The notes under the pieces: generated by a model | Seen by the model: only the letters and a program-made list of their open reading frames with translations | Database searches by the model: none | Told to the model about the DNA's origin: nothing | Shown here: positions 1 to 59,330 of the stretch, piece by piece | Position numbering within the stretch: position 1 is the first letter of the stretch | Layout: the number at the start of each line of letters is the position of its first letter | DNA from: Fimbriosthenelais zetlandica | Taxonomy: Eukaryota | NCBI GenBank assembly: GCA_977030845.1 | Contig: OZ365111.1 | Coordinates: forward strand, 51,274,001 to 51,338,000 | DNA: 64,000 bases | Direction of reading: 5' to 3' | Position numbers and translations under genes: made by a program

Positions 1-2
1 TG

Positions 3-19921: not shown

Positions 19922-20790
19922 AAAAACTAGAATATATTTCAAGATATAGACCTGCAAAGATTATTATGCCATGAAGGCACCAATGAATGAAATTTAATAA
20001 AATCTAAAGCACTTGACTGGTTTACGACATTAATCTACATTTTATTTTTAAACTTCTTGACTGTGGCAGTTTAAAATGTATGGTCGGCTAGAATTTCGCC
20101 ACTTTTTATGCTACGTTTCCCCTCCCTAGAGTTTGACATTTAACATAAAATTGCTTTTTAATGTCATTACATGCTTTAATGCTCAGTGAAATCTAACAAG
20201 CTTTAGGCTACAGACCGACATATTGGGCCTTTTCCGGGTCGTCATTGGGGCAAATAGAGCTTAAGCCAAATAGACATAATTATGCAGTAAAATTTTACCA
20301 TTTATTTCCAGCCATAAATTTTACCCTTGCCACTCGTTTTCTAATATTTCAGTTCTTTTCAGACATCTCTTATTTCACCAAATAGGAATTAAACATTTCA
20401 AGAGCTATATTTTTCGTATGTCCAGCCTTTCAAACATAGCTTCTTCCGAATAAATGTATTGCCGTTATCAACTATTTCCAGACAGGCCTCTAAAGGCTAA
20501 AAAGGTCATTATACTTCCAAATTGTAGCATTTTGTCAGATCAAGATCAAGGCATCACATTAGATTTCTTTGGGTTTATTAATTTCACCATAACACTGAAT
20601 CTCACGATTCCCTTTAACAGGTTAATAGGCCTTCAACATTGGTAGTCCGTTAACGATTCACAACATTGGTAGTCCGTTAACAATTCAACAAGCAGTCCCT
20701 TAACAATTCAATGAGCGTAGTCCATTAACAATCTGTATACATGTCCATGTATATTAATAGAGGGTCATCATCAGATCATCACAGGGTCAG

Positions 20791-23700
20791 CTAGTAAGTG
20801 AAAGGCAGGTCCATCAGGCCTACTGTATGGAGGGTCTTGATGTAAGCTTCAGCAATTCTCAGCTTCAGAATACCAACAGGTATGTTGGACACGGGTACAA
20901 AGTGTGCGCCAATACTGCAAGATGAACAATGACAGTTTGTAAAGTCAATGTAAAAGTAAAACGCTAGCAAAATCAAATTCCATTTCAAAACAGATTTTTC
21001 GATCCTTACCCAGATTCCAGAGCCTCGATGAAGGCAGGTGCTGCCAGGATAGCTTTAACAGGGGTGGCGTCCAATCCAGCGGCAGGTACTAAAAGCAAAA
21101 AAAAATACATTAAACCAGAGTCATCAAGTTAAAAAAACAATCTTTAAAACTTACTTTAATGTTTTACTCACCGATTCCAACGGCTTTGCTGGTGATGATT
21201 GCTTTAACCACATGGTCAAACACGGGTAGGATGTCTCCAGCTGTCACCATCGTTGTTGTGCTGCCCGACAGTACATCAGCCAGTCTAAATGACAAAAACA
21301 ATCTACGTCTTAGCCTAAATGAAATAGCATAAGCCATGTTCCCATAAATTTTCTAAAGGCACAAGTTGAAAAGGTACATACACGTCAGCGTATTTGGCGC
21401 GGATGTTTGTGTAGATCGGATTCTCTAAGAAGACTTCAGGTGCAATGGGTGCACCAAAGGCACCAATACCAGCAGCAATGGGTGCACCAAAGGCACCAAT
21501 GTGGTTACTGAAAGGTCCAAGGCCACCAATGGGAGAACCAAAACCTCCAATACTAGCAGTTGGGTTAGCAACTGTGCCGAAGGGCATGCCATAAGGTCCA
21601 GCAGCCAGGGGAATGCCATAACCAGCCGCTATGTGGTTGCCAAAAGCACCTAGTCCACCAGCAGTAACAGGCCATGCACGGATTCCTGCTGCAGGATGGC
21701 CGAACGCAGTGAAGGGACCAATTCCAGCAGCCAGGGGAATGCCAGCAGCAATGGGGTTACCGAAATAACCCATACCAGGAGCAATGGGTTCACCAAAAGC
21801 ACCAATACCAGCAGCCAAGGGATTGCCGAAAGTACCAGCACCAAGGGGGACGCCAAAGGCAGCACCAATTCCAGCAGCAATCGGGTTGCCCAACGATCCA
21901 AATCCTCCGATAGCTCCACAAACACCGGTGGTTACACAAGGCATTGCCATGTGCAATACTGAAAAGATCGTCATAATTTTTAAAATCTAAGTCCTTTAAA
22001 AAATATTGGAAATCCCCAATGTATCAAAAAAGTCATATTCTCACCCAGTTGGCTGGCGAACCATGCTCGTACTGCGGCCATGTTTTCCATCTTGGCGATC
22101 GGTGAGAGGGCAACACGAAGCTCATTAGCCAGCACTGCAAACGGTGTGGTCAGTAGTCCTTCAATGGGAGCAATGGCGGCCATGTTGGATGCACCAATCA
22201 TCTTACCAAGCCAAGATTTCAGCACAGACGGTCCAAAGGCTGCCTCGATCCTTGCAGGTAGCTCCACTAGTATCGCTTTCTCCCACACTTTGTAAGCCAT
22301 TGGTTCGGCTCCACAGATCGCTACTTCCTTCTTGATCACCGTCATGATCTTAGCTTTCATTACAGGCAAGATGGACGCCATTGTTGCCGTTCTCCAGTCA
22401 GCTGGGATGATCTCCTTCACTACAGTCACATCTGTCGTAGTACAAGGTTAAGATATTCTAAGCAATCTCTCAGCTTTCAAACATGTTCAGTCTTTAGAAT
22501 ATTAAGCCATTACCCAAAGAGTTAAGAAAAGTCAACCTACCAGACACAGACGCTATGTGGGCAGCAATGGCCGCCTGTTCACGTTCAAACAGTGAAGTAA
22601 CTGCTGTCACAATCTCAGCCTCAGTGACAGTCTTGGTCTTGGCAGCGCTGGTCAGGGCGTAGTGAAGTACACTGGCGACAGAGGCCTTAGCCTTGATGAA
22701 GTGCACATTGACGGCACCAGGCAGCAATGCTACAAGAAGAATGCATGCAATTACATTACTTTTATCATAAGGCAACATTGAATTATGTTGGCCACAGTTG
22801 GTTTCATCTAGTATGAAATAAAGTGCAATGGTCGTGCCATACCTGCAGCGAATTTGGCGGCCACACCCTTGATGCAAGTTGCTGGGACAGCCGGTTCAAT
22901 TTCCTCAAACAGAGGACCGATCATTTGGGCGATTACTGCAGGGTGGATGCGAGCTAGTGGTTCAAATCCAGTTAAAGCATGGCCTGCCAGGATGGCTGCA
23001 ACTGCTGGGTCTGCAATTTAAATAAATACCACAACATCTGGTCTCTTATGTAGACTCTAAAATGCGGTTAGGATAACACAAATACAACTTACCATAGATT
23101 GGTGCTACACCTGCACCGGAAGCTCCCATCAGTCCCCACGCATGCGCCATAGCCATGATGGGTTTGATACTGACGATGTCCGCTGCAATGTCCATCTTTA
23201 AAGCCTTGACCACTCCACCACAAGCTCCAACCACAGGGGCGATCATAGCTACAACCTGCAAGATAGGCTACCTCAATTACTCTACCATTCAATAGCCACT
23301 ATCATATGTCAAGTGTCAGCCCAGCCTGGCTAAAAGTTCAAGAAATTCCTATCCCTTTACCTTAGCCCTTTGAGCAACCGGAATAGCAGAAGCCAAGTCC
23401 ATTGCGACTATGTTGGGAATTGCCGTGGCAAACCTGCCGAACAATTTAAACATGTATACATCAACTTAATGTAAACTAAGTATGATAATCTATTGCAATA
23501 ATCTAAATCTCAAACTGAAGTCGCTAGGCTTAGTTTGCATAATATCAGAAATTTAACCAACCTGTTCTCAATTTGAACAATGGTAGCATGAACAGCAGAT
23601 GTCAGTACTTTAGCGTCCATGGCACAGATGCTGCCAGAATCCACCTTGGCGACGATATGGTTGAAGGCATCCACGATAGCGGGACCAGTCAGGGCTCCCT

Positions 23701-25791
23701 CACGTTCTAACGTGGCCAGAGATCGCACCACCATCCAAGATACCTTCTTTACGATGGCCAGGGCTACAAACAAGCAAACAGGGTTTATTATTAAAAGGAT
23801 TTAAACATTTACATCAAGACATTAGATCCATCATTAGGTCATATTTTTTACCTTCAACAGCATCTTCTGGAAGCAATTCTTCTTGCATCAAATCTTGGAA
23901 GATAATGGGTTCATCAAGCACGGATACGTCTACACCAGGGAGCGCCATTTTGATTGCCTTCATATGTACAATGGCGACAGTCTTCAGTAGGGCTAAAAAG
24001 ATAATTCAGTTTCAGAAACTGTCCAAGTTATAATGTTTTGTGCAATCAGGAATTTGCAGGCATTGTCAATCTTACCAGCATGATAGACGGCCTTCATCTG
24101 AGCCGAACACGCGTGGGTGGCATGCGGGAAGCTGAGGACTGAAGCTCCAAAGGCTGGTACATGCAATCCTGCGATTGCACCGGCAGAAAGTGGGGCGCCA
24201 AAACTAGCAGCATAACCAGGAGCAATACCAGCAAGACCAGCAGCAGAGACAAGGCCAGGAGCGATTCTTGCGATACCAGGGACGATACCAGCATCAACGG
24301 GGCCGACAAAGCTAGGAGCGATGCCAGCAATGGCTGGAGCAGCCATTCCTACTCCAAATACTGCAGCGGGATCAGCCCGGACAACGTGCACTGCAAGAAA
24401 GTTACATCTCACTCTAGAAACCGCTACACCCAAAACTAGTTGATAAAGCTTATGGCTTGCCTAGCGTCAATTAAGACTTACCGATATGATGGATGAAGGC
24501 AGCGATGGGCAGACCACGCGGCAGAGCGAGAGCGATATGATCAGCGTTGGCGACGATGGCATGAATGATGAAATGAATGGTCTTAACGATGTCCTGGGTT
24601 ACGACAGGGGCAAGGCTAGCGTCCGTTACGATTGTCTCTACAGCTGATGTGATTTTAGCGAAGGCTGGAGCTCCAACAATCATTCCATGTTCCCTGGAAC
24701 ATTTTCAGGTCAGGTCATTCTGACAATGTTGAAATTGCCTCAACAAAGAGCCTTAAAGTTGATTTCTCATTACAACATTTCAAGGCACGATCTAGGCATC
24801 AGGTTGTGCATCCATCGACAATTAAATTACTAATAGTTTTAAATTACTAATACTCACATGGCAACCAAAGCGTCCATTTTCTCCACGAAGGCCCACAGTT
24901 GTTTCTCAGAGATCATCTCGCTACAGGGAGCGGAAGCCAAGGCGGCCATGACAGTTTTGAAGTGGGTGATGACGTCATTTCCCATGACAAGTCCTGGTTT
25001 AGTTACAGCCATCTTCACAAAGTCATCAAGACCTGCACCAATACCGGAAATGCCTGGAAAAGATTGGAAAGATTGAATTGCAGCATTGTAAACCTTCGTG
25101 AAAGTTTTAAAAACGCATCTCAATATGATCAGATAAAAGACTTACCTTTGATGATAGCGGGGTACTCAGCCAGGGTACTGACGGGCGTGAAGTAACCACC
25201 CACAATGTCATTGATGACATCACCAACAATGGCTTCAGTTTCAGACGGTATGAAAGCCAGAGACCTGAGAGCCATACCACGGATCACAGCCGAGCTCACC
25301 ACCGTGTTAGGCTTCATTAATCCTGAAATAATTACAAACCGATGAGAACAATGCTAATACAAGCAAGTCTAGTTGTATGCTGTAAATATAAAGCAGTCAC
25401 ATCTGACAAACTTATCCAAGAATTAGTCAACAACAGACGCAAGCAGCAGAATGGAAGAGAAATTCTCACCAAAAGCAATAGTGAATTTGGCGCGTTGAGG
25501 GCAGGTCATTCGGGCGGCGGTCGTCTTCCATACATCCTGTAGAGTAGCGGCTATCTGGCCGACCTCAGCCTCGGTCATGTCCACTACAGCCTTAGTGGAC
25601 ATCTCCCGCACGCCAAACACGGCGCCACTTTCTGTAAGACAAGACGAAAGTCAGTTAAAGTGGACTATCAGTCAAGTTTCTGTGGAGAATTTGAACACAT
25701 TTAATGAAATTAAATTGGAAATAAAATATGAAAACTTACCGACGCCATAGGCGACGAGTAAGGCGAGGCAGAGAGGTAGACAGCGCCACAT
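20791..25791 (-). CDS. unassigned secreted modular helical/elastin-like-linker protein, copy 1 (17 exons, 1,109 aa; most divergent copy)
   Basis: Signal peptide MWRCLPLCLALLVAYGV. Exons 25740-25791, 25470-25631, 25146-25322, 24858-25053, 24482-24693, 24076-24390, 23852-23992, 23562-23763, 23361-23433, 23093-23255, 22843-23010, 22541-22729, 22045-22431, 21382-21958, 21172-21284, 21010-21088 and 20791-20914 all have GT-AG, matching phases and sum to 3,330 nt; introns 82-164 nt; AATAAA at 20574-20579 (minus). Confidence 0.85.
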
Positions 25792-25869
25792 GTTGAGATG
25801 TAGAAGTCGTGGATGTATGTAGAATGGTTGCTCTGAACGAGCAGTGACCAGAGCTGGTCATCTCACGCC

Positions 25870-25876
25870 TTTTATA
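25870..25876 (-). promoter_or_regulatory. TATA box of copy 1 (TATAAAA) with Inr-like TCACT 31 nt downstream
   Basis: Minus strand GGGAGTATAAAAGGCG; TCACT centred at 25845; ATG 79 nt from the box's gene-side end. Confidence 0.75.
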
Positions 25877-26287: not shown

Positions 26288-26371
26288 GTCAGGATGGCCG
26301 AGCGGTCTAAGGCGCTGCGTTCAGGTCGCAGTCCACTTCTGTGGGCGTGGGTTCGAATCCCACTTCTGACA
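26288..26371 (+). tRNA. tRNA-Leu(CAG), array A no.1
   Basis: 84-nt GTCAGGATGGCCGAGCGGTCTAAGGCGCTGCGTTCAGGTCGCAGTCCACTTCTGTGGGCGTGGGTTCGAATCCCACTTCTGACA; class-II cloverleaf with variable arm; A and B boxes; followed by an oligo-dT terminator. Confidence 0.97.
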
Positions 26372-26456
26372 TTTTTTTTCACCCATGTGAGTGTATGACT
26401 TGTCTTGTTTTCAATTAGTTTGTACTCGAGGGTTGGCTATTGTTCATAGATCAGCG

Positions 26457-26540
26457 GTCAGGATGGCCGAGCGGTCTAAGGCGCTGCGTTCAGGTCGCAG
26501 TCCACTTCTGTGGGCGTGGGTTCGAATCCCACTTCTGACA
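26457..26540 (+). tRNA. tRNA-Leu(CAG), array A no.2
   Basis: Identical 84-mer; TTTTT downstream. Confidence 0.97.
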
Positions 26541-26627
26541 AGTCTTTTTCCACCCATTTGATGTTATGCATTGTCTTGATTTCAATTAGTTTGTACTAGA
26601 GGGTTGCCTGTTGCTCATTGGCCAGCG

Positions 26628-26711
26628 GTCAGGATGGCCGAGCGGTCTAAGGCGCTGCGTTCAGGTCGCAGTCCACTTCTGTGGGCGTGGGTTCGAATCC
26701 CACTTCTGACA
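26628..26711 (+). tRNA. tRNA-Leu(CAG), array A no.3
   Basis: Identical 84-mer. Confidence 0.97.
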
Positions 26712-26793
26712 GGTGTTTTTCCACCCATTTGAGAGTATGCCTTGTCTTGTTTTCAATTGTACTCGAGGGTTGGCTGTAGCTCTTTGTCTACCA

Positions 26794-26877
26794 GTCAGGA
26801 TGGCCGAGCGGTCTAAGGCGCTGCGTTCAGGTCGCAGTCCACTTCTGTGGGCGTGGGTTCGAATCCCACTTCTGACA
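26794..26877 (+). tRNA. tRNA-Leu(CAG), array A no.4
   Basis: Identical 84-mer. Confidence 0.97.
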
Positions 26878-27140: not shown

Positions 27141-27855
27141 CAACTACATTTCACTGTGACCTGGGCCTCATTATTTTATTGTTTTAACATTATGAACATT
27201 AGTGTACCACATTATGAACATTACTGTATCACATTTTAAAATCGCCACAGCATAGTGATGATTTCCCATATCTTTTCAGTGATAACTTTAAAAGTGACAT
27301 GCATGATGGCATGACCTTTCCATCAATTACGATGGCCACCATTAATTTGAGACGGTGGGAATCACGTTGCCTCTTAAATGACGATTTTTAAAACCAGTTC
27401 TATATGTAGTGGCACCTTATTCAATAAGAGAAGTGTAATAATTATACTACTATAGGCTATACGTCAAAGTCCATACTCCGACACCTTAATGGACTTCGAT
27501 TAGAGTGAACTATTAGAGATGGTTTCGCCAAGTATAAACCATTTATCTTTGGCAATTTACTCCAGTAAGCGTCCTTTAAATCACGCAAATATATGTTATA
27601 CGAATATATTTAATCGGCTGCCATTTCACTATTAAATAACTAATATTGTATAGGAGATATAACGGCCCATTGAAAATCTGTAGCCCTTTGTCAAATCAAG
27701 ATGGAGGCATTAAATTTGATTGCATGCTTTCAGTTTATTAAATCCACCATAAGTCAACTAACAAATTCCTCTAACAGGCTAATAGGTGCTGTCATGAAGC
27801 GTAGTCCGTTAACAGTCTGTATACACGAGGTCCATGTATAGTGGTCATCACAGGG

Positions 27856-30800
27856 TCAGCTGGTAAATGAAGGCATGTCAGTCAGGCCGACTGTATGGAG
27901 GGTCGCGATGTAAGCTTCAGCAATTCTCAGCTTCAGAATACCAACAGGTATGTTGGACACGGGTACAAAGTGTGCTCCAATACTGCAAGATGAACAATGA
28001 CAGTTTGAACAAAGTCAATGTAAAGCAAAACGCTAGCAAAAAATCAAATTCCTTTTCAAAAATGAATATTTTCGATGCTTACCCAGATTCCAGAGCCTCG
28101 ATGAAGGCAGGTGCTGCCAGGATAGATTCAACAGGGGTGGCGTCTAATCCAGAAGAAGGTACTAAAATATAAAATATTACATTATACCATAGTCCATCAT
28201 TCAGCCATTTAATTAAGTAAAAATAGCACAGATGGTTCTAGTTCAAGTATTTAATCTTACCGATTCCAACAGCTTTGCTGGTGATGATGGCTTTAACCAC
28301 ATGGTCAAACACTGGTAGGATGTCTGCAGCTGTCACCATCTTGGTCGTGCTACCCACCATTACATTAGCTAGTCTGAAAGGTAAAAATATTATCAAGCCA
28401 CGTCTTACATGCCATTCTACTAGGTTCCCCAGATACCTCCCAGATATATTTATAAGGTTCTTACACGTCTGCGTATTTACTGCGGATGCTTGTGTAGATT
28501 GAATTCTTCAAGAAGACTTCAGGTGCAATGGGTGCACCAAAGGCACCAATACCAGCAGCAATGTGGTTACTGATCAGTCCAAGGCCACCAATGGGAGAAC
28601 CAAAACCTCCAATACCAGCAAGTGGGCTAGCATATGCGCCGTAGGGCATGCCATAAGGTCCAGCAGCCATGGGAATGCCAGCAGTAATGGGACTACCATA
28701 AACTCCAACTCCAGCAGCAATTGGGTTACCATAAGCTCCAACTCCAGCAGCAATTGGGTTACCAAAAGCACCAACTCCAGCAGCAATGGGGTTACCAAAA
28801 GCGTCTATTCCCATACCAACAGTCAGGGGATTGACAGAAGCAGCCATGAGGGGGTTACCGACAGCAGCAATGGGGTTACTCATAGTACCAACTGCAGCAG
28901 CTAGGGGATTGCCAAATGCGTCAATTCCAGCAGCGTCAATTCCAGCAGCAGGAATGCCTGCAACGAGGGTCTTTCCAAAAGCAGCCGCGAGGGGGCTACC
29001 AAAAGCACCAAGACCAGCAGCGATGGGGTTACCAATAGCGTTCATTCCAATACCAGCAGCCAGGGGATGGCCAAGAGCAGCCGCAACGGGGAGGCCAAAG
29101 GCAGCACCAATTCCAGCAGCCAGGGGGTGAGCTAAGGCTCCAATTCCAGCAGCTATAGGGATTCCAGCAGCAATGGGACTGCCATAAGGTCCAATAGCTC
29201 CAATAGCTCCACAAGCTCCGGTGGCTACACAGGGCATTGTCATGTGCATAACTGAAAAGATTATCATATTTAAAATAGGTTTTTAAACATTTGGACATTC
29301 AGACTAAATTTTTTAGCTTTTAAATTCTCACCCAGTTGGCTGGCGAACCATGCTCGTACTGCGGCCATGTTTTCCATCTTGGCGATCGGTGAGAGGGCAA
29401 CACGAAGCTCATTAGCCAGCACTGCAAACGGTGTGGTCAGAAGTCCTTCAATGGGAGCAATGGCGGCCATGTTGGATGCACCAACGATCTTACCAAGCCA
29501 AGACTTTAGCACAGATGGTCCAAAGGCTGCCTCGATCCTTGCAGGTAATTCCACCAGTAGAGTCTTCACTGAAGCTTTGTAAGCCATTGGTTCAGCTCCA
29601 CAGATCGCTACTTCCTTCTTGATCACTGTCATGATCTTAGCTTTCATTACAGGCAAGATGGACGCCATTGTCGCCGTTCTCCAGTCAGCTGGGATGATCT
29701 CCTTGATGGCCTTCACTACAGTCACATCTGATAAATCAAGGTTCAGACATAACCAATTTATCATATTTTCACTTTACCATAGGAAACTTTGGGCTTTGGC
29801 CCAATTTGGCAACACTAAAGCCAAGCCATTTGTGTTGTATTGAAACACAAGCTACCAGCCTATGACAACTTACCAGCCACAGATGCTATGTGGGCCGCAA
29901 TGGCCGCCTGTTCACGTTCAAACAGTGAAGTAACTGCTGTCACAATCTCAGCCTCAGTGACAGTCTTAGTCTTGACAGCGCTGGTCATGGCGTAGTGAAG
30001 TACACTGGCGACAGAGGCCTTAGCCTTGATGAAGTGGGCATTGACGGCACCAGGCAGCAATGCTACAATTACAAAAATAACATTCCAAATGCATGTAGCA
30101 ATGCAATCATTACGCTTAAGCTACAGAATACGGACCATTCCATAGCAGGTGAAATCCATTGCCATACCTGCAGCGAATTTGGCGGCGACACCCTTGATGC
30201 AAACTGCTGGGACAGCTGCTTCTATTTCCTTAACCAGGGGCACGATCATTTGGGCGATTACTGCAGGGTGGATGCGAGCTAGTGGTTCAAATCCAGTCAA
30301 AGCATGGGCTGCCAGGATGGCTGCAACTGAGGGGTCTGCAATTGATATTAATACCAACAATATGTATTAGGTCCAACCATATATTAGGTCCATTTTATAG
30401 ACACTGAAGAGTCTTTAAGATAGCACCAATACAACTTACCATAGATTGGTGCTACACCTGCACCGGAAGCTCCCATCAGTCCCCACGCATGCGCCATAGC
30501 CATGATGGGTTTGATACTGACGATGTCCGCTGCAATGTCCATCTCCAAAGCCTCGATCACTCCACCACAAGCTCCAACAACAGGGGCGATCATAGCTACA
30601 ACCTGTAAGAAAAGTATTGCCTCAATTACTCTACAATTCAATAGCCACCATCCTTTTATCACTCCCTTATGTGTTAAGTTGAACAAGTTTAGTAAATTCA
30701 TTTCAGTTACCTTGGTCTTTTCAGCAACAGGCATTACAGATGCCAGGTCCCTTGCGATCATGTTTGGTATTCCAACAGCAAACCTTTTAAAGAAACAAGG

Positions 30801-33513: not shown

Positions 33514-33591
33514 GTTGAGATGTAGAAGTCGTGGATGTATGTAGAATGGTTGCTCTGAACGAGCAGTGACCACAGCTGGTGATCTCACGCC

Positions 33592-33598
33592 TTTTATA
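33592..33598 (-). promoter_or_regulatory. TATA box of copy 2
   Basis: Identical motif and identical 79-nt offset from the ATG. Confidence 0.75.
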
Positions 33599-34010: not shown

Positions 34011-34094
34011 GTCAGGATGGCCGAGCGGTCTAAGGCGCTGCGTTCAGGTCGCAGTCCACTTCTGTGGGCGTGGGTTCGAATCCCACTTCTGACA
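34011..34094 (+). tRNA. tRNA-Leu(CAG), array B no.1
   Basis: Identical 84-mer. Confidence 0.97.
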
Positions 34095-34180
34095 TATTTT
34101 TTTCACCCATGTGAGGGTATGCCTTGTCTTGATTTCAATTAGTTTGTACTCGAGGGTTGGCTGTTGCTCCTAGACCAGCA

Positions 34181-34264
34181 GTCAGGATGGCCGAGCGGTC
34201 TAAGGCGCTGCGTTCAGGTCGCAGTCCACTTCTGTGGGCGTGGGTTCGAATCCCACTTCTGACA
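34181..34264 (+). tRNA. tRNA-Leu(CAG), array B no.2
   Basis: Identical 84-mer. Confidence 0.97.
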
Positions 34265-34350
34265 TATTTTTTTCACCCATGTGAGGGTATGCCTTGTCTT
34301 GTTTTCAATTAGTTTGTACTCGAGGGTTGGCTGTTGCTCCTAGACCACCA

Positions 34351-34434
34351 GTCAGGATGGCCGAGTGGTCTAAGGCGCTGCGTTCAGGTCGCAGTCCACT
34401 TATGTGGGCGTGGGTTCGAATCCCACTTCTGACA
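34351..34434 (+). tRNA. tRNA-Leu(CAG), array B no.3 (loop variants)
   Basis: D-loop C>T and variable-loop C>A; stems intact. Confidence 0.92.
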
Positions 34435-34521
34435 AGTCTTTTCCCACCCATTTGATGGTATGCCTTGTATTGTTTTCAATTAGTTTGTACTCGAGGGTTG
34501 GCTGTTGCTCTTTTTTCAACA

Positions 34522-34605
34522 GTCAGGATGGCCGAGCGGTCTAAGGCGCTGCGTTCAGGTCTCAGTCCACTTCTGTGGGCGTGGGTTCGAATCCCACTTC
34601 TGACA
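34522..34605 (+). tRNA. tRNA-Leu(CAG), array B no.4 (anticodon-stem mismatch)
   Basis: CGCAG>CTCAG in the 3' anticodon stem; possibly impaired. Confidence 0.8.
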
Positions 34606-34692
34606 AGTCTTTTCCCACCCATTCGATGGTATGCCTTGTATTGTTTTCAATTAGTTTGTACTCGAGGGTTGGCTGTTGCTCTTTTTTCAACA

Positions 34693-34776
34693 GTCAGGAT
34701 GGCCGAGCGGTCTAAGGCGCTGCGTTCAGGTCGCAGTCCACTTCTGTGGGCGTGGGTTCGAATCCCACTTCTGACA
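34693..34776 (+). tRNA. tRNA-Leu(CAG), array B no.5
   Basis: Identical 84-mer. Confidence 0.97.
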
Positions 34777-34863
34777 AGTCTTTTTCCACCCATTTGATGG
34801 TATGCCTTGTATTGTTTTCAATTAGTTTGTACTCGAGGGTTGGCTGTTGCTCTTTTTTCAACA

Positions 34864-34947
34864 GTCAGGATGGCCGAGTGGTCTAAGGCGCTGCGTTCAG
34901 GTCGCAGTCCACTTCTGTGGGCGTGAGTTCGAATCCCACTTCTGACA
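34864..34947 (+). tRNA. tRNA-Leu(CAG), array B no.6 (T-stem mismatch)
   Basis: D-loop C>T plus GTGGG>GTGAG (A.C mismatch in the T stem). Confidence 0.8.
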
Positions 34948-35035
34948 TATTTTTTTCATCCATTTGAGGATATATGCCTTGTCTTGTTTTCAATTAGTTT
35001 GTACTCGAGGGTTGGCTGTTGCTCCTAGACCAGCA

Positions 35036-35119
35036 GTCAGGATGGCCGAGCGGTCTAAGGCGCTGCGTTCAGGTCGCAGTCCACTTCTGTGGGCGTGGGT
35101 TCGAATCCCACTTCTGACA
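35036..35119 (+). tRNA. tRNA-Leu(CAG), array B no.7
   Basis: Identical 84-mer. Confidence 0.97.
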
Positions 35120-35206
35120 AGTCTTTTTCCACCCATTTGATGGTATGCCTTGTATTGTTTTCAATTAGTTTGTACTCGAGGGTTGGCTGTTGCTCTTTTT
35201 TCAACA

Positions 35207-47400: not shown

Positions 47401-50352
47401 AAGTTGAACAAGTTCATTAAATTCCTTTCAGTTACCTTGGCCTTTTCAGCAACAGGCATTACAGATGCCAGGTCCCGTGCGATCATGTTTGGTATTCCAA
47501 CAGCAAACCTATTAAAGAAACAAGGCGAGTACAACTGAAGGGATATCAGGCTAATCAACTTAATAGATTCCGACTATCTATAATCAAACTCTGGCAAGTC
47601 CCCACTTTTGAATCTAAACTAAATATTTTTATACCAACCCGTTCTCAATCTTGACAATGGTAGCATGAACAGCAGACGTCAGTGCTTTAGCATCCATGGC
47701 ACAGATGCTGCCAGAATCCACCTTGGTGACGATATGGTTGAAGGCATCCACGATAGCGGGACCAGTCAGGGCACCTTCACGTTCTAACGTGGCCAGAGAT
47801 CGCACCACCATCCAAGACACCTTCTTTACGATGGCCAGGGCTGCACACAAAACAAATTAAAACGGATTTCAACACAAGGTATAATAAAATCTAGCTCTTC
47901 ATATTCAAGACAAGCCCACGACATTTGTTACCTTCGACAGCGTTTTCTGCAACAAGTTCCTGTTGGATCAAATCTTGGAAGAAGGCAGGTTCAGCAAGCG
48001 CTGCTAGGTCTACACTTGGGAGCGCCATTTTGATGGCCTTCGTATGAACAATGGTGATAGTCTTCAGTAGGGCTGAAAGATCAAACAACTCTGAAAATAA
48101 ATCTACATACAAATGTGCCTAACTAACATTAAGTTAGATTGAACATTGGTGCCATCAAAATTGATTTGCAGGCATTGTTAATCTTACCAGCATTGTAAAC
48201 AGCCTTCATCTGAGCCGAGCAGGCGTGGGTGGCAGGCGGGAAGCTGACGACTGAAGCACCAAAGCCAGGTACAGGCAATCCAGGGGCAATACCAGCCAAA
48301 CCAGCAGCAGAGATACCAGGGGCAATACCAGCCAAACCAGCAGCAGAGATACCAGGGGCAATACCAGCCAGACCAGGGGCAATACCAGCCAGACCAGGGG
48401 CAGCGATACCAGGGGCAATACCAGCCATACCACCAAGACCAGGGGCAATTCCAGGAGTAGCGATACCAGCAAGACCAGCAGCAGAGATACCAGGGGCTAT
48501 TCCAGCCAGACCAGGGGCAGCGATACCAGGGACAATTCCAGCAAGACCAGGGGCAGCGATACCAGGGACAATTCCACCAAGACCAGCAGCAAGTGGGGCA
48601 GCAATACCAGATGCAACACCAGGGGCGATTCCAGCAATTCCAGCTTCAGGCATAGAGGCTCCCATGCCAGCAAAACCGGGGGCAATTCCAGCTAGAGGGG
48701 TAGCAATACCAGGAGCGATGCCAGCAATGGCCGGGGCAGCAATACCAGCGGCAATTCCAGCAAGACCAGCAGTAGCGGCAATTCCAGCTTCAGGCATAGA
48801 GGCTGCCATACCAGCAATACCGGGTGCAATTCCAGCTAGTGGAGAAGCAATACCAGGAGCGATGCCAGCAGCAATACCAGGAGCGATACCAGCAATCGCC
48901 GGGGCAGCAATACCAGACATACCAGCTCCATATACTGCAGCAGTATCAGCCCGGACAACATGCACTGCAAGAAAATTACCATCTCACTTGTAAAGTAAAG
49001 ACAAAACTATAAAGTCCAACCATTTGATTAATCTCGTTCCGAGCTCATCTTCTATCCAGGCAACTAAGACTTACCGATATGATGGATGAAGGCAGCGATG
49101 GGCAGACCACGCGGCAGAGCGAGAGCGATATGATCAGCGTTGGCGACGATGGCATGAATGATGAAATGAATTGTCTTAACGATGTCTTGGGTTACGACAG
49201 GGGCAAGGCTAGCGTCCGTTACGATGGTCTCTACAGCTGATGTGATTTTAGCGACGGCTGGAGCTCCAACAATCATTCCATGTTCCCTGTAACATTCATT
49301 AAAAAATACTCTGGATTTTTTTGCTTTTATCTCAAGCTAACCGTATGAGCTAGGCACAGAAAGACTCGACCAGAATTTGATGGCCGTAGGCTTTTGTATC
49401 CGACATAAGCCATTAGAGATTTACCAAATTCAGCTACTTACATGGCTACAACAGCGTCCATTTTCTCCACGAAGGCCCACAGTTCTTCCTCAGAGATCAT
49501 CTCGCTACAGGGAGCGGACGCCACGGCGGCCATGACAGTTTTGAAGTGGGCGATGACGTCATTTCCCATGACGAGTCCTGGTTTAGTTACAGCCATCTTC
49601 ACAAAGTCATCAAGTCCTGCGCCAATACCGGAAATGCCTGGAAAAGATCATTGAATTGCAGCATAGTAAACCTCCGTGAAAGTTTTAATAACGCGTCTCA
49701 ATATGATCAGATAAAAGACTTACCTTTGATGATAGCGGGGTACTCAGCCAGGGTACTGACGGGCGTGAAGTAACCACCCACAATGTCATTGATGACATCA
49801 CCAACAATGGCTTCAGTTTCAGACGGTATGAAAGCCAGAGACCTGAGAGCCATACCACGGATCACAGCCGAGCTCACCACCGTGTTAGGCTTCATTAATC
49901 CTGAAATAATTACAAACTGATTAGTACAAGTAAAATAAGCAAAATATAGGCCATTTACGGGTCCAAAATAGACCCAGTAGCACCGACATTTAGAGGTAAA
50001 GTCTTTTGTACCCAGCCATTTACGAATAGAAGAATTCTCACCAAAAGCAATAGTGAATTTGGCGCGTTGAGGGCAGGTCATTCCGGCGGCGGTCGTCCTC
50101 CATACATCCTGTAGAGTAGCGGCTATCTGGCCGACCTCAGCCTCGGTCATGTCCACTATAGCCTTAGTGGACATCTCCCGCACGCCAAACACGGCACGAC
50201 TTTCTGTAAGTCAACACAAAAGTCAGTTAAAGTGGAATTTCTGTGGAGAATTTGAACAACTTTAATGAAATTAAGTTGGAAATAAACTATAAAAACTTAC
50301 CGACGCCATAGGCGACGAGTAAGGCGAGGCAGAGAGGTAGACAGCGCCACAT
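44474..50352 (-). CDS. same family, copy 4 (~1,370 aa)
   Basis: Same exon series; exon 6 = 777 nt, exon 14 = 895 nt with (GNPIAAGVGAF)11. Confidence 0.85.
45328..45690. repeat. 33-bp coding minisatellite x11 (GNPIAAGVGAF) in copy 4 exon 14
   Basis: 11 perfect AAAAGCACCCACTCCAGCAGCAATGGGGTTACC units. Confidence 0.95.
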
Positions 50353-50430
50353 GTTGAGATGTAGAAGTCGTGGATGTATGTAGAATGGTTGCTCTGAACG
50401 AGCAGTGACCAGAGCTGGTCATCTCACGCC

Positions 50431-50437
50431 TTTTATA
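50431..50437 (-). promoter_or_regulatory. TATA box of copy 4
   Basis: Identical motif and offset. Confidence 0.75.
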
Positions 50438-50848: not shown

Positions 50849-50932
50849 GTCAGGATGGTCGAGCGGTCTAAAGCGCTGCGTTCAGGTCGCAGTCCACTTC
50901 TGTGGGCGTGGGTTCGAATCCCACTTCTGACA
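50849..50932 (+). tRNA. tRNA-Leu(CAG), array D no.1 (D-stem disrupted, possible pseudogene)
   Basis: GGCCG>GGTCG and TAAGG>TAAAG give U.G and C.A in the D stem; the changes are not compensatory. Confidence 0.7.
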
Positions 50933-51018
50933 TAATTTTTTCACCCATGTGAGTTCATGACTTGTCTTGTTTTCAATTAGTTTGTACTCGAGGGTTGGCT
51001 GTTATTCATATGCCAGCA

Positions 51019-51102
51019 GTCAGGATGGCCGAGCGGTCTAAGGCGCTGCGTTCAGGTCGCAGTCCACTTCTGTGGGCGTGGGTTCGAATCCCACTTCTGA
51101 CA
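51019..51102 (+). tRNA. tRNA-Leu(CAG), array D no.2
   Basis: Identical 84-mer. Confidence 0.97.
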
Positions 51103-51576: not shown

Positions 51577-52280
51577 AACTCGCTTTTCACTGTGACCTGG
51601 GCCTCATTATTTTAACATTATGAACATTAGTGTACATTTTAAATCGCCACTGCATATATATAGTGATGATTTCACATATCTTTTCAGTGATAACTTTGAA
51701 AGTGACATGCACGATTACATGACCTGTCCACCAATTACCCTGGCTACCATTAATTTGTTCTAAGATTTTCAGAGACCGTGGGAATCACGCTACCTCTTAA
51801 ATAACGATTTTTAAAAACAAGGTCCCAATCTATATGCTGTGGCACCTAATTCAAGAATAGAAAAGGACTAGGGAAATTAACCTATAGCCTAACTCCCAAT
51901 ATAATTAAAGTCCATTTAACTGGATTACAGTTAATAAGAGATGGTTTCGCCAAATATAAGCCATTTAGTTTTGGCTATTTGCTCGAGTAAGCGTCCCTTA
52001 AATCACGCATTTATACATTGTGATAAGAATATATTTAATCGGCTGCCATTTCACTTTTAAATAACTAATATTGTATAGGAGATATAACGGCCCATTGAAA
52101 ATCTGGAGCCCTTTGTCAAATCAAGATGGAGGCATTAAATTTGATTGCATGCTTTCAGTTTATTAAATCCACCATAAGTCAACTAACAGATTCCTCTAAC
52201 AGGCTAATAGGTGCTGTCATGAAGCGTAGTCCGTTAACAGTCTGTATACACGAGGTCCATGTATAGTGGTCATCACAGGG

Positions 52281-55200
52281 TCAGCTGGTGAATGAAGGCA
52301 TGTCAGTCAGGCCGACTGTATGGAGGGTCGCGATGTAAGCTTCAGCAATTCTCAGCTTCAGAATACCAACAGGTATGTTGGTCACGGGTACAAAGTGTGC
52401 GCCAATACTGCAAGAGAAAGAAGACAGTCGCTATACCAGAAAAGAGATCGTCATGCAACTTTTAGACCATGGGATGCAAGCCAAGAAACCCTCATGGTTA
52501 ATTTCAAATACATCATTTCGATCCTTACCCAGATTCCAGAGCCTCGATGAAGGCAGGTGCTGACAGGATAGATTCAACAGGGGTGGCTTCCAATCCAGCG
52601 ACAGGTACTAAGAACGATACATTTCATTACATACAGTACAATATACCATAGTCCATCATTCAGCTGTTTCAGTACATTAAAAATAGTAACCAGAGATGGT
52701 TCTAGTTCAAGTATTCAGTCTCTTACCGATTCCAACGGCTTTGCTGGTGATGATGGCTTTAACCACGTGGTCAAACACTGGTAGGATGTCTGAGGCTGTC
52801 ACCATCTTGGTCGTACTACCCACCATTACATTAGCCAGTCTGAAAAAGGACAAAATCATCAAGCCACGTCTTACATGCCATAATACTAAGTTCCCCAGAT
52901 ACCTCCCAGATATATTTATAAGGTTCTTACACGTCTGCGTATTTACTGCGGATGCTTGTGTAGATTGAATTCTTCAAGAAGACTTCAGGTGCAATAGGTG
53001 CACCAAAGGCGCCAATACCAGCAGCAGCAACGGGGTTACTGATCAGTCCGAGGCCACCAATGGGAGAACCAAAACCTCCAATACCAGCCATTCGGTTAGC
53101 ATATGCACCGTAGGCCATGCCATAATGTCCAGCGGTAATGGGACTACCAAAAGCACCCACTCCAGCAGCAATGGGGTTACCAAAAGCACCCACTCCAGCA
53201 GCAATGGGGTTACCAAAAGCACCCACTCCAGCAGCAATGGGGTTACCAAAAGCACCAAGTCCAGCAGCAATGGGGTTACCAAAAGCACCAAGTCCAGCAG
53301 CAATGGGGTTACCAAAAGCACCCACTCCAGCAGCAATGGGGTTACCAAAAGCACCCACTCCAGCAGCAATGGGGTTACCAAAAGCACCCACTCCAGCAGC
53401 AATGGGGTTACCAAAAGCACCCACTCCAGCAGCAATGGGGTTACCAAAAGCACCAAGTCCAGCAGCAATGGGGTTACCAATAGTACCAATTGCAGCAGGT
53501 AGGGGATTGCCAAATGCGTCAATTCCAGCAGCAGGAATGCCAGCAACGAGGGGCGTTCCAAAAGCACCAAAACCAGCAGCGATGGGGTTACCAATAGCGT
53601 TCATTCCAATACCAGCAGCCAGGGGATTGCCAAGAGCAGCCGCAATGGGGAGGCCAAAGGCAGCACCAATTCCAGAAGCAATAGGGATTGCAGCAGCAAT
53701 GGGATTGCCATAAGGTCCCATTGCTCCAATAGCTCCACAAGCACCGGTGGCTACACAGGGCATCGTCATGTGCATTACTGAAAAGATTATCATCTTTATC
53801 ATCATCATCATAAAGTTTAACAGTTAATAACATTTAGTCTGAATTTCCTAATGTTTAAATTCTCACCCAGTTGGTTGGCGAACCATGCTCGTACTGCGGC
53901 CATGTTTTCCATCTTGGCGATCGGTGAGAGGGCAACACGAAGCTCATTAGCCAGCACTGCAAACGGTGTGGTCAGTAGTCCTTCAATGGGAGCAATGGCG
54001 GCCATGTTGGATGCACCAACGATCTTTCCAAGCCAAGACTTTAGCACAGATGGTCTAAAGGCTGTCTCGATCCTTGCAGGTAGCTCAACTAGTATAGCTT
54101 TCTCCCACGCTTTGTCAGCCATTGGTTCAGCTCCACAGATCGCTACTTCCTTCTTGATCACCGTCATGATCTTAGCTTTCATTACAGGCAAGATGGACGC
54201 CATTGTCGCCGTTCTCCAGTCTGCTGGGATAATCTCCTTGATGGCCTTCACTACAGTCACATCTATAATAAGTCACATCTGTAAAGTTTCAGACCCGACT
54301 AATATATTTTCAGCTTACCATATAAATATGTGCTTAGGCCCAATTTGACAAAACTAAAGCCAAGCCATTTGTGTTGTATGGAAACACAAGCTACCAGCCT
54401 ATGACAACTTACCAGTCACAGATGCTATATGGGCAGCAATGGTCGCCTGTTCACCTTCAAACAGTGAAGTAACTGCTGTCACAATCTCAGCCTCAGTGAC
54501 AGTCTTGGTCTTGACAGCGCTGGTCATGGCATAGTGAAGTACACTGGTGACAGAGGCCTTAGCCTTGATGAAGTGAACATTGACGGCACCAGGCAGCAAT
54601 GCTACAAGAACAAAAATAACATACCAAATGCATGTTGCAATGCAGGATTACCTTTCTAGCCACAGCTATGCTCCATTTCATAAACTAATAGGAAAACTCT
54701 TGTCATACCTGCAGCGAATTTGGCGGCGACGCCCTTGATGCAAACTGCTGGGACAGCCGCTTCTATTTCCTTAACCAGGGGCACGATCATTTGGGCGATT
54801 ACTGCAGGGTGGATGCGAGCTAGTGGTTCAAATCCAGTCAAAGCATGGCCTGCCAGGATAGCTGCAACTGCTGGGTCTGCAATTGACATCAGTACCAACA
54901 ATTATGCCATATATTTGGCCATTTCATAGACTCTAAAGCTTCTTTAAGAAAAATCGAACTAGTCTTACCATAGATTGGTGCTACACCTGCACCGGAAGCT
55001 CCCATCAGTCCCCACGCATGCGCCATAGCCATGATGGGTTTGATACTGACGATGTCCGCTGCAATGTCCATCTTTAAAGCCTCGACCACTCCACCACAAG
55101 CTCCAACCACAGGGGCGATCATAGCTACAACCTGTAAGATAGGGCACCTCAATTACTCTACCATTCAATAACGACCAGCATATTGTGAGCCCCATATGTG

Positions 55201-58088
55201 TTAAGTTTAACAAGTTCATTAAATTTATTTCAGTTACCTTGGCCTTTTCAGCAACAGGAATTACAGATGCCAGGTCGCTTGCGATCATGTTTGGTATTCC
55301 AACAGCAAACCTATTAAAAGAAACAACGTTACAATTTATCAGGCCAATTAAGTCAATAGAATCCGACTATTGAGACCAACTCAGTCCCCAATCAAACCTA
55401 AAATTAGTTATACGGACCAGTTCTCAATCTTGACAATGGTAGCATGAACAGCAGACGTCAGTGCTTTAGCATCCATGGCACAGATGCTGCCAGAGTCCAC
55501 CTTGGCGACGATATGGTTGAAGGCATCCACGATAGCGGGACCAGTCAGGGCTCCCTCACGTTCTAACGTGGCCAGAGATCGCACCACCATCCAAGACACC
55601 TTCTTTACGATGGCCAGGGCTGCAAATAAACATGGTTAATTAAAAAAGGTACAACACTCTCGCTTTAAATATTAAAAACAAGTCCATGACATTTGTTACC
55701 TTCGAAAGCGTCTTCTGCAACAAGTTCCTGTTGCATTAAATCTTGGAAGAAGGCAGGTTCAGCAAGCGCTGCTAGCTCTACACTTGGGAGCGCCATTTTG
55801 ATGGCCTTCGTATGAACAATGGTGATAGTCTTCAGTAGGGCTGAAAGATCGAACAACTCAGATAAGAAATCGACCTACAAATGTTTCGAACTAAACATTA
55901 AGTCAAAATGGACATTCAATAATTATTCGCAGGCATTGTTAATCTTACCAGCATGATAGACAGCCTTCATCTGAGCCGAGCAGGCGTGGGTGGCAGGCGG
56001 GAAGCTGAGGACTGAAGCTCCAAATCCAGGGGCAATTCCAGCGATACCAGGGGCAATTCCAGCGATACCAGGGGCAATTCCAGCGATACCAGGGGCAATT
56101 CCAGCGATACCAGGGGCAATTCCAGCGATACCAGGGGCAATTCCAGCGATACCAGGGGCAATTCCAGCGATACCAGGGGCAATTCCAGCGATACCAGGGG
56201 CAATTCCAGCGATACCAGGGGCAATTCCAGCGATACCAGGGGCAATTCCAGCGATACCAGGGGCAATTCCAGCGATACCAGGGGCAATTCCAGCGATACC
56301 AGGGGCAATTCCAGCGATACCAGGGGCAATTCCAGCGATACCAGGGGCAATTCCAGCGATACCAGGGGCAATTCCAGCGATACCAGGGGCAATTCCAGCA
56401 AGACCGGGGGCAGCGATACCAGGGGCAATACCAGCAAGACCAGCAGCAAGTGGGCCAGCAATACCAGACGCAACACCAGGGGCGATTGCAGCAATTCCAG
56501 CTTCAGGCATAGAGGCTCCCATGCCAGCAATACCGGGAGCGATGCCAGCAATGGCTGGGGCAGCAATACCCGGGGCAATTCCAGCTAGAGGGGCAGCAAT
56601 ACCAGGCGCAATTCCAGCTAGAGGGGCAGCAATACCAGCAGCGATGCCAGCAATTGCTGGGGCAGCAATACCAGACATACCAGCTCCATATACTGCAGCA
56701 GTATCAGCCCGGACAACGTGTACTGCAAGAAAATTACCATCTCTCTAGCAAAAGACAAAACTATAAAGTCCAACCATTTGATTAATCTTGTTCTGAGCTC
56801 AGCTTCTATCCAGGCAACCAAGACTTACCGATGTGATGGATGAAGGCAGCGATGGGCAGACCACGCGGCAGAGCGAGAGCGATATGATCAGCGTTGGCGA
56901 CGATGGCATGAATGATGAAATTAATGGTCTTAACGATGTCCTGGGTTACCACTGGTGCAAGGCTAGCGTCCGTTACGATGGTCTCTACAGCTGATGTGAT
57001 TTTAGCTACGGCTGGAGCTCCAACAATCATTCCATGTTCCCTGAAACATTCATAGAGTATTCCTGCGTTTACGCTTTTATCTAAAGCTAACCGTATGAGC
57101 TAGGCACAGAAAGACTGGACCAGAATTTGATGGCCGTAGATTGCCTTTTGTATCCGACATAAGCCATTAGAGATTTACCAAATTCAGCTACTTACATGGC
57201 GACCACAGCGTCCATTTTCTCCACGAAGGCCCACAGTTCTTCCTCAGAGATCATCTCGCTACAGGGAGCAGACGCCAAGGCGGCCATGACAGTTTTGAAG
57301 TGCGTGATGACGTCATTTCCCATGACGAGTCCTGGTTTAGTTACAGCCATCTTCACAAAGTCATCAAATCCTGCACCAATAGAGGAAATGCCTGGAAAAG
57401 ATCATCGAATTGTGAGGTTCCACGATGTTTTAAAAAATCTACATCTCCAAAAGATCAGAGCCACAATTTACCTTTGATCATGGCGGGGTACTCAGCCAGG
57501 GTACTGACGGGCGTGAAGTAACCACCCACAATGTCATTGATGACATCACCAACAATGGCTTCAGTTTGAGACGGTATGAAAGCCAGAGACCTGAGAGCCA
57601 TACCACGGATTACAGCCGAGCTCACCACCGTGTTAGGCTTCATTAATCCTGAAATAATTACAAACTGATTAGTACAAGTAAAATCATCAAGATATAGGCC
57701 ATTTACAGTTTCAAAACAGCTTTTAAATTCCTCTTCTACTGGATCTATGCACTGTAGAGGAATACAGAAATTCTCACCAAAAGCAATAGTGAATTTGGCG
57801 CGTTGAGGGCAGGTCATTCCGGCGGCGGTCGTCCTCCATACATCCTGTAGAGTAGCGGCTATCTGGCCGACCTCAGCCTCGGTCATGTCCAATACAGCCT
57901 TAGTGGACATCTCCCGCACGCCAAACAAGGCACGACTTTCTTTAAGTCGACACAAAAGTCAGTTAAAGTGGAATTTCTGTGGAGAATTTGAACAACTTTA
58001 ATGAAATTAAGTTGGAAATAAACTATAAAAACTTACCGACGCCATAGGCGACGAGTAAGGCGAGGCAGAGAGGTAGACAGCGCCACAT
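52281..58088 (-). CDS. same family, copy 5 (~1,355 aa)
   Basis: Same exon series; exon 6 = 774 nt with (IAGIAPG)17; exon 14 = 847 nt with 10 GNPIAAG(V/L)GAF units; the exon-8 donor is weaker (GTCCGT). Confidence 0.82.
53149..53478. repeat. 33-bp coding minisatellite x10 (GNPIAAG[V/L]GAF) in copy 5 exon 14
   Basis: 10 units in protein order L,V,V,V,V,L,L,V,V,V. Confidence 0.95.
56026..56403. repeat. 21-bp coding minisatellite x17 (IAGIAPG) plus a flanking unit in copy 5 exon 6
   Basis: 17 perfect CCAGGGGCAATTCCAGCGATA units. Confidence 0.95.
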
Positions 58089-58166
58089 GTTGAGATGTAG
58101 AAGTCGTGGATGTATGTAGAATGGTTGCTCTGAACGAGCAGTGACCAGAGCTGGTCATCTCACGCC

Positions 58167-58173
58167 TTTTATA
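58167..58173 (-). promoter_or_regulatory. TATA box of copy 5
   Basis: Identical motif and offset. Confidence 0.75.
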
Positions 58174-59330
58174 CTCCCACAGGTCCACACAGAATCCCAA
58201 ACCACGGACCAGGATCAAAGGTCACATATAGGGGGGTAGGTAGGTGACAATTAGCTGGACAGTACACTGGACTGAAGCCCTCAACATGTGGGCCATCTCA
58301 ACACATTTATTATCTTAAATGGTAAAAGATGGGTATTATTTTGGTATTTATTTGTTTGATTTTTATCAAAAAGGGGAATTTGTCAAAGTGCGGCCTCCCA
58401 CTGAGTATGGAAGGGTCCATTTTCAAAAGGCTGGTCACTCTTAATTGGCACATTGCCATTTTGAGAGTCCGTCTCGGTCAGCCAAGCGTGAAACCAGTTC
58501 TACAAGATCCAAGCTATATATATATTTTTTCGTTCAACTTTAATTTCACCGATTTATTATTTTACGCAAGCTTTATATTTTCTTTGCGCTTTCCGATCTC
58601 CAATTTTATCTGAACTTTGCTCATTTCAAAATAATTTATTAGGCCTACCGCACCGGAACCTAGAAGTTAGAATCAAGAAAATGTTGAGCGTTTCCTCGAT
58701 ATCATATATACTTCCTTCTATAGCCTACTTCCATGATTCAGTTTAATCTTCATAAATCAATGTGATTTCACTATAGAAAACATGCTGCAATCCAAAGGTG
58801 AACATACTGGAGTAATAACGTATAAATACAAGCATCTTGATGATATATTTTATTATTTTTCCAGCGACTGGAGTGAATACAACATGGTATGTTAAAGTTT
58901 ACTTAAACTTTGCAGCAGTACAGTCGTGGTGTATTGTCACTTCATTTCCTTATCGTAGGCCCTAATGTCAAGTACCGGTATAGGCTACCTGCTAATCTAG
59001 CCTGACATACCTTACCTATGTTTACCTGTATCTAGAGTCGTGATACATTGTTCTCTTCTGATATACCTTCCTACCAGACATGAATCTATATAGATGGTGT
59101 CTCACAAACATGGATTAAAATACATTCACTCTGAAACGTGAAAGTTTTCCTTAAAATCACAGAGACTATAATCATAGGACTTGACTCTGGACCTCATGGG
59201 ACGTCACAGATATAAGGGAACATTTCCCTGACTAGAACTGTACAGAGAATGATAACATAACATGGAACTAGAACAAGGATAGTTTTACTATCAAAACGAA
59301 ATCAAAAATCGATCCCCGGACTCTTACATA

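Follow-up and report, generated by a model that had tools for sequence, protein, structure and literature searches.

A tandem array of five genes in Fimbriosthenelais zetlandica predicted to encode secreted, extremely hydrophobic multi-block proteins

The locus described here raises the question of what is made by five adjacent genes whose predicted products carry long, nearly uncharged repeats reminiscent of elastin. It lies in a stretch of 64,000 nucleotides from Fimbriosthenelais zetlandica (assembly GCA_977030845.1, contig OZ365111.1, positions 51,274,001 to 51,338,000 of the forward strand), which is called the window below and from whose first letter all coordinates are counted. A first-pass annotation of the bare sequence had placed a five-copy tandem array of an unrecognised secreted beads-on-a-string protein with elastin-like linkers at 20574-58510. 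Judging from the sequence, we see about an even chance that the five genes code for a secreted, extremely hydrophobic multi-block protein which serves as a lineage-restricted, self-assembling component of an extracellular material, be it a matrix, coat, fibre or cement. The composition argues for a material between elastin and silk. Tandem arrays of genes for low-complexity structural proteins are already known from invertebrates; the sequence family is apparently new.

A direct-repeat scan resolved the region of about 20.5-58.5 kb into five units in direct orientation, spaced about 7.7-8.8 kb apart. The minus strand is the coding strand of the array and carries all long open frames rich in alanine, glycine, isoleucine, valine and proline. 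Copy 4 was used as the reference model; its 17 exons were obtained by donor and acceptor scoring between successive open frames, and the boundaries were projected onto the other four copies. Comparison of the five 3′ ends revealed a conserved acceptor of exon 16 (TTTTAG/TACCT, with the slash at the splice site) and a last exon that starts at TTGCAG/TATTGG and ends with DMPSFTS and the stop codon. Each copy comprises 17 exons and 16 introns with GT-AG borders (80 of 80 overall) and is free of in-frame stops. The coding sequences occupy 20791-25791 (copy 1, 1109 amino acids), 27856-33513 (copy 2, 1308), 36636-42350 (copy 3, 1312), 44474-50352 (copy 4, 1373) and 52281-58088 (copy 5, 1356), all on the minus strand. 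With start codons at 25791, 33513, 42350, 50352 and 58088, the distances between them agree exactly with the 7722, 8837, 8002 and 7736 bp given before, and the earlier claim of five complete 17-exon genes with unbroken frames is borne out by the spliced models. The introns of copy 4 are short (83-155 nt). Its intron 2 (49901-50041, minus strand, 141 nt) keeps the reading frame and contains no stop codon, and together with exons 2 and 3 it forms one open reading frame (ORF) of 167 codons; if retained, it would add 47 residues without breaking the frame.

The copies are clearly distinct from one another. Outside the linkers, their proteins are 85-99% identical, with copy 1 as the most divergent one (85-96% to the others), and exon 13 is 95-98% identical between copies. 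In all ten pairwise comparisons of the non-linker parts by the method of Nei and Gojobori, the synonymous divergence (dS) amounts to 0.05-0.15 and the ratio of nonsynonymous to synonymous divergence (dN/dS) to 0.22-0.39. Introns are 82-93% identical and thus diverge at approximately the synonymous rate. The copies also vary in which linker repeats they carry and how many of them, and in how many tRNA genes lie beside them. Since differences are found at synonymous sites, in introns, in repeats and in tRNA number, a trivial duplication in the assembly does not account for the array. The copies are, as judged by their sequences, distinct paralogues under purifying selection, a pattern unlike that of pseudogenes or of an assembly duplication.

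The signals expected around a transcribed gene are likewise repeated in each unit. A TATAAAAG box is located at -85 from the ATG in all five copies (25869-25876, 33591-33598, 42428-42435, 50430-50437 and 58166-58173, minus strand), and an initiator (Inr)-like TCACTGC, matching at six of seven positions, follows 31 nt downstream; the upstream sequence is conserved between copies over about 330-420 nt. The TATA+Inr promoter proposed earlier is supported in every copy. Polyadenylation signals (AATAAA) were found on the minus strand at 20574-20579, 27734-27739, 36514-36519, 44352-44357 and 52159-52164 for copies 1 to 5, at a distance of 211 nt past the stop in copy 1 and of 116 nt in copies 2-5. 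The previously given start of the array, 20574, corresponds to the signal of copy 1.

Codon use and intron phase point in the same direction as the promoters. In comparison with six neighbouring ORFs, the array genes avoid GGG (3 of 170 glycine codons versus 69 of 272, p = 5e-13) and ATA (10/148 versus 82/223, p = 5e-12), as well as TTA and GCG. This bias persists when the non-repeat domains alone are considered (ATA p = 1e-5, TTA p = 7e-4, GGG p = 4e-3). Eleven of the 16 introns are in phase 1 (expected share 0.3, P = 0.0016), and a phase-1 intron directly follows the signal-peptide exon. Both features are, reportedly following Patthy, typical of extracellular modular proteins. Codon avoidance, the conserved TATA box and the phase-1 skew are indirect signs of high expression or of an extracellular character.

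Exon 1 codes for MWRCLPLCLALLVAYG/V, with the slash at the likely cut. It contains one basic residue and an 11-residue hydrophobic core, with alanine at -3 and glycine at -1, so that by eye a basic n-region, a hydrophobic core and an A-x-G before the cut are present. These are the marks of a typical signal peptide, which the first-pass annotation had assigned to each copy. The mature protein of copy 4 is divided into an N domain (residues 18-266, exons 2-5, 249 amino acids), linker 1 (residues 267-525, exon 6, 259 amino acids), an M domain (residues 526-969, exons 7-13, 444 amino acids), linker 2 (residues 970-1267, exon 14, 298 amino acids) and a C domain (residues 1268-1373, exons 15-17, 106 amino acids). 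The three domains are rich in alanine, valine and isoleucine, and copy 4 as a whole contains 21% Ala, 12% Gly, 11% Ile, 9% Val and 7% Pro. The grand average of hydropathicity (GRAVY) is 0.74-0.85 for the whole proteins, which is unusually high for a secreted protein, and 0.5-0.9 for the modules alone. Charged residues make up 12-17% of the domains and 2-5% of the linkers. No copy contains an N-x-S/T glycosylation sequon. A charge-free window of 19 residues with a Kyte-Doolittle mean of at least 2.2 is also absent from all copies, in agreement with the earlier statement that there is no transmembrane segment. The C-terminus (TDMPSFTS) bears neither a KDEL-type retention signal nor a hydrophobic tail of the kind seen with glycosylphosphatidylinositol (GPI) anchors. 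The five copies share nine invariant cysteines in the mature protein. A cluster of tyrosines at the end of linker 2, GPYGMPYGAY, is conserved in copies 2-4; in copy 1 two positions of this block are occupied by Phe and Val, and copy 5 has GHYGMAYGAY.

An alternation of helical-type modules with two linkers rich in Gly, Ala, Pro and Ile had been suggested before, and our analyses are consistent with it. Hydrophobic-moment spectra of the N and M domains peak at 90-100 degrees (z 2.8-3.2 versus shuffled sequences), as expected for amphipathic alpha-helices. Exon 13, the longest non-repeat exon (46082-46477 in copy 4, minus strand, 131 full codons), was chosen as query for homology and structure work. 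Its AlphaFold model, with the five paralogues as input, is all-helical with six helices at a mean predicted local distance difference test (pLDDT) of 55, which was not good enough for a fold search. Taken together, the helical character of the domains is weakly indicated. Linker 2 was modelled as coil without secondary structure (pLDDT 28), which fits intrinsic disorder and not a regular solenoid. An internal duplication of modules of about 230 amino acids (22045-25631 in copy 1 and equivalents) was considered and found no support in the comparisons made: hhalign probabilities among N, M1, M2 and C remain below 3%, Smith-Waterman z values are 0.8-2.7 versus shuffled sequences, and the cysteines are out of register save for one weak pair.

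The linkers are the most variable part of the proteins. Linker 1 is encoded by exon 6 (24076-24390, 31442-32131, 40195-40965, 48188-48964 and 55949-56722 in copies 1 to 5, minus strand) and linker 2 by exon 14 (21382-21958, 28465-29251, 37289-38006, 45104-45998 and 52931-53777). They comprise about 105-300 amino acids, are rich in Gly, Ala, Pro and Ile and nearly uncharged; those of copy 1 are short and degenerate. Linker 1 of copy 5 carries 18 units of IAGIAPG, the underlying 21-bp array having 99% matches; copy 2 has seven units of IGGIAPG followed by six of IAGIAPG, and copies 3 and 4 have 12-residue units, GIAPGISAAGLA and GIVPGIAAPGLA. In linker 2, GNPIAAGVGAF occurs 11 times in copy 4, about nine times in copy 5 and three times each in copies 2 and 3, and is degenerate in copy 1. 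All three motifs named in the first-pass annotation were thus recovered. The copy-specific arrays are near-perfect, with 96-99% nucleotide matches. Because the arrays differ from copy to copy while the domains are conserved, the repeat blocks turn over quickly and independently, and from their sequences the linker arrays appear to be still expanding. Opposite the linker exons, or out of frame with them, the window also holds ORFs of 180-250 codons (45278-45925 and 48229-48993, plus strand, and equivalents). These ORFs were rejected as genes; they are by-products of the tandem repeats.

How far the term elastin-like applies to these linkers can be judged by composition. In PMC7061623, which cites Rauscher et al. 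2006, a value of at least 0.60 for the sum of twice the proline and the glycine fraction (2P+G) is described as dividing elastomers from amyloid-prone sequences; the principle of a compositional threshold is treated in PMC5703643. Of the pure units, IGGIAPG passes with 0.71, in the block of copy 2 alone, IAGIAPG is borderline with 0.57, and both GNPIAAGVGAF (0.45) and GIAPGISAAGLA (0.42) remain below. The whole linkers reach 0.32-0.50 in all five copies. The earlier description therefore stands in part: the linkers are indeed hydrophobic, nearly uncharged and contain Pro-Gly, but they stay under the threshold, the elastin hexapeptide VGVAPG is absent from all copies, and a Lys-Ala cross-linking motif was found in none. 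Lysine accounts for 0.4-1.1% of linker residues. In hydrophobicity, disorder and Pro-Gly content the linkers are elastin-like, yet they are located on the silk and amyloid side of the boundary and lack the cross-link chemistry of elastin.

The search for relatives was carried out with single exons, which lowers sensitivity, and exon 13 alone was searched at full depth. When all 16 mature exons of copy 4 were scanned one by one against Pfam-A (hmmscan, E <= 1), only chance matches below threshold were obtained. In these scans no exon matched the N- or C-terminal domain families of spidroins, the Vitellogenin-N, DUF1943, vWD or apolipophorin domains, or chitin_bind_4 (R&R consensus) or another cuticle domain. 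Among 1.84 billion cluster representatives, phmmer with exon 13 (131 amino acids) as query did not find a single protein at E <= 0.001. Sequence searches of the PDB with exons 5, 8 and 12 and with a profile of exon 13 gave nothing usable, including no match to the vitellogenin-type and apolipophorin domains just named; hemoglobin matches at E of about 0.04 were rejected, as no stretch supported them. In the ESM Atlas, exons 13 and 5 found low-score neighbours only (best scores 0.76 and 0.69), and the recognition values fell clearly short of the level that 91% of proteins from known families attain. With linker exon 14, a combined word-index and HMMER search led to two proteins, P0007 and P0008. 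They have the AFGNPI/FGNPI repeat alone in common with linker 2, and their flanks, their composition rich in Asn, Gln, Thr and Asp and their architecture are unrelated, which was taken as convergent low complexity and not as homology. A literature search for the repeat motifs yielded incidental GIAPG strings only. The claim of an unrecognised family is in line with these results, as no characterised family was matched in Pfam, among the cluster representatives, in the PDB or in the ESM Atlas. Neither did the exon-wise searches reveal a yolk, lipid-transfer or enzyme family, the kind of match which the first-pass annotation had named as speaking against its proposal.

Among known systems, the aciniform spidroin AcSp1 is similar in architecture. 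In this protein, it is the linkers together with the terminal domains that bring about liquid-liquid phase separation and the assembly of fibres (PMC4481645, PMC12541454). AcSp1 is also a beads-on-a-string protein, in which globular multi-helix domains rich in Ala, Ser, Val and Ile are joined by disordered linkers; the resemblance is one of architecture only and is drawn, on our side, from gene sequence and low-confidence models. Like AcSp1, the array products would be secreted bulk proteins. However, no sequence similarity between the two was found, and AcSp1 iterates units of 200 amino acids whereas the array proteins have three distinct, non-repeated and putatively helical domains of 106-444 amino acids. 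The linkers of the array proteins are in addition much longer (105-300 amino acids), nonpolar and themselves tandemly repetitive, and the gene is split into 17 exons by short introns.

Tropoelastin is likewise very hydrophobic and secreted, and its near-uncharged xAPG repeats of Gly, Pro and aliphatic residues (VGVAPG in elastin, IAGIAPG here) alternate with Ala-rich helical segments. In the array linkers, however, the dominant residues are Ile and Ala instead of Val and Gly, 2P+G is 0.32-0.50 and not at least 0.60 as for elastomers (PMC7061623), and KA or KP lysine cross-linking motifs are lacking, as is VGVAPG. The helical parts of tropoelastin are short poly-Ala-Lys segments, those of the array proteins large Cys-bearing domains, and no homology was detected. 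Short motifs connect the array proteins to a third group. Low-complexity cuticle proteins of arthropods carry AAP(A/V) repeats in secreted proteins rich in Gly, Ala, Val and Ile, and AAP[AVIL] occurs two to six times per copy in the array proteins. The likeness is one of Ala-Ala-Pro-aliphatic motifs; the array proteins are much larger, possess three helical domains and have no Pfam match to a chitin-binding (R&R) domain.

The first-pass annotation had taken the protein for a gland-secreted structural material, in which secretion from a gland is conjecture at this stage. From the features above a mechanism can be sketched for a self-assembling extracellular material. The helical domains, partly charged and presumably folded, would hold the protein in a dispersible state on its way through the secretory pathway, and could also supply specific contacts and disulfide cross-links, the latter because nine cysteines are an odd number. 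After release, the disordered nonpolar linkers would self-associate by hydrophobic phase separation, by analogy to aciniform spidroin. As Pro and Gly are mostly under the elastomer threshold, the linkers may convert in part to beta-rich, silk-like contacts and would not behave in a purely rubber-like way. Paralogues with different repeat blocks may then give materials of differing compliance. A more specific proposal is that a new lineage-restricted family makes an elastic or tough extracellular material through an Ile-based analogue of xAPG, (I[A/G]GIAPG)n together with (GNPIAAGVGAF)n, independently of vertebrate elastin and of silks, with the Cys-bearing hydrophobic helical domains as solubilising and cross-linking nodes and with five paralogues that tune the mechanics. 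In this specific form we consider the proposal tentative and rather doubtful.

Several observations weigh against a structural material of this kind. The signal peptide and its cleavage site were judged by eye. A helical fold of the domains is weakly indicated, by a low-confidence model and a periodicity with z of about 3. The reference set for the codon bias was small and consists of six ORFs of the window only. Homologues were sought exon by exon, and homology spread over several short exons could be missed. The low 2P+G of the whole linkers in all five copies argues against a classical elastomer (PMC7061623). No K-A(2,3)-K or poly-Ala-Lys motif and no cross-linking motif with Lys or His was found in any copy, and any cross-link chemistry is at present a guess.

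The same hydrophobicity could also serve other purposes. The protein might carry lipids or other hydrophobic ligands after secretion, or coat an interface in the manner of apolipoproteins or surfactants. In that case its amphipathic helices would be wound around lipid or occupy the boundary of water with oil or air, with the Gly, Ala, Pro and Ile segments as flexible spacers. The extreme hydrophobicity of the helical modules (GRAVY 0.5-0.9), the amphipathic periodicity of 90-100 degrees and a signal peptide combined with the lack of a glycosylation sequon would all suit such a role. However, no exon matches vitellogenin or the large lipid transfer proteins (LLTP), apolipophorin or any other Pfam family, nine invariant cysteines suggest covalent networking, and long, perfect and fast-expanding low-complexity arrays in five copies with TATA promoters fit bulk structural proteins better; we regard a role of this kind as unlikely. 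It is less likely still that the protein stays within the cell or the secretory pathway, as a matrix of granules or vesicles or in association with membranes through its hydrophobic helices. Its hydrophobicity is indeed comparable to that of membrane proteins, but every module contains 12-17% charged residues, no charge-free window of 19 residues reaches the Kyte-Doolittle mean of 2.2, and the C-terminus lacks a KDEL-type signal and a GPI-like hydrophobic tail.

A young amplified locus without real function, with silent genes or incipient pseudogenes, or with a copy number inflated by the assembly, is in our view highly improbable. It would agree with the lack of a homologue for exon 13 among the 1.84 billion representatives. 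Nevertheless, all five copies keep 17 exons, GT-AG borders at 80 of 80 introns, frames of 1109-1373 codons, identical promoter boxes and polyadenylation signals; dN/dS is 0.22-0.39 at a dS of up to 0.15, and repeats, introns and tRNA number vary by copy.

The array is interspersed with genes for tRNA-Leu(CAG), arranged with a 171-bp period on the opposite strand upstream of copies 1-4 and missing at copy 5. Four of them are located at 26288-26877, nine at 34011-35462, three at 42846-43271 and two at 50849-51102 (plus strand). The tRNA gene nearest to each protein gene is 496-498 nt away from its ATG; 12 of the 18 are identical, and a run of four to eight T follows each. These arrays are part of the duplicated unit, and we found no evidence of a functional tie to the protein genes. 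A supply of tRNA for the codon demand of the protein was considered: Leu makes up about 6% of residues and CTG 36% of Leu codons, and since what the protein requires is Ala, Gly and Ile and not Leu, the idea was rejected. The tRNA arrays may have promoted unequal crossing-over.

A C2H2 zinc-finger gene (16221-19921, plus strand) borders the array on one side; in the C-terminal part of this gene, a 27-bp tandem repeat (19529-19676) encodes PVGETVIG-like units. Just past the other end, two single-exon ORFs for rhodopsin-type G protein-coupled receptors (GPCR) were found at 59331-60494 (387 amino acids) and 61745-62992 (415 amino acids) on the plus strand; the best relative of the former among 5.8 billion proteins is just 24% identical. 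As the array is flanked by the zinc-finger gene and a GPCR ORF, all five copies lie within the window, which contains no N. An ORF for a leucine-rich-repeat (LRR) protein (11240-12304, plus strand, 354 amino acids) has its only close relatives, at 56-59% identity, in ENA/Logan assemblies (ERZ25767047, ERR14368248), and the next best matches are 28% identical, which points to a lineage with little sampling so far. The species seems to be absent from the protein collection searched; the gene content is that of an invertebrate animal. Within 10 kb of the LRR locus in a relative, no homologue of the array or of the zinc-finger gene was detected, so that synteny did not extend past the LRR gene. 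At 222-4898 (plus strand) the window also contains an uninterrupted ORF of 1558 codons with many Trp-containing repeats (W-x-W, NGT-x-W). It also has a stalk rich in Ser and Thr, a transmembrane stretch and a cytoplasmic tail of basic character, and looks receptor-like.

What the array may mean for the biology of such animals has to be seen against the background that invertebrate genomes often contain lineage-specific low-complexity structural genes and orphan secreted proteins of a repetitive kind. With such genes being frequent, the present case is promising and not exceptional. It offers a clean example of a functional orphan, being intact, under purifying selection and codon-biased, with no homologue found (for exon 13, among the 1.84 billion representatives). 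The predicted design lies between elastin and silk, as near-perfect arrays of heptads and 11-residue units of Ile, Ala, Gly and Pro, close to the boundary between elastomer and amyloid, are joined by hydrophobic helical domains. The five paralogues would form a natural series, with IGGIAPG, IAGIAPG and 12-residue units, for the effects of Pro/Gly content and of Ile in place of Val on coacervation temperature and beta-conversion. If its proteins are expressed and exported, an invertebrate biomaterial that is so far uncharacterised would have its genetic basis in this array.

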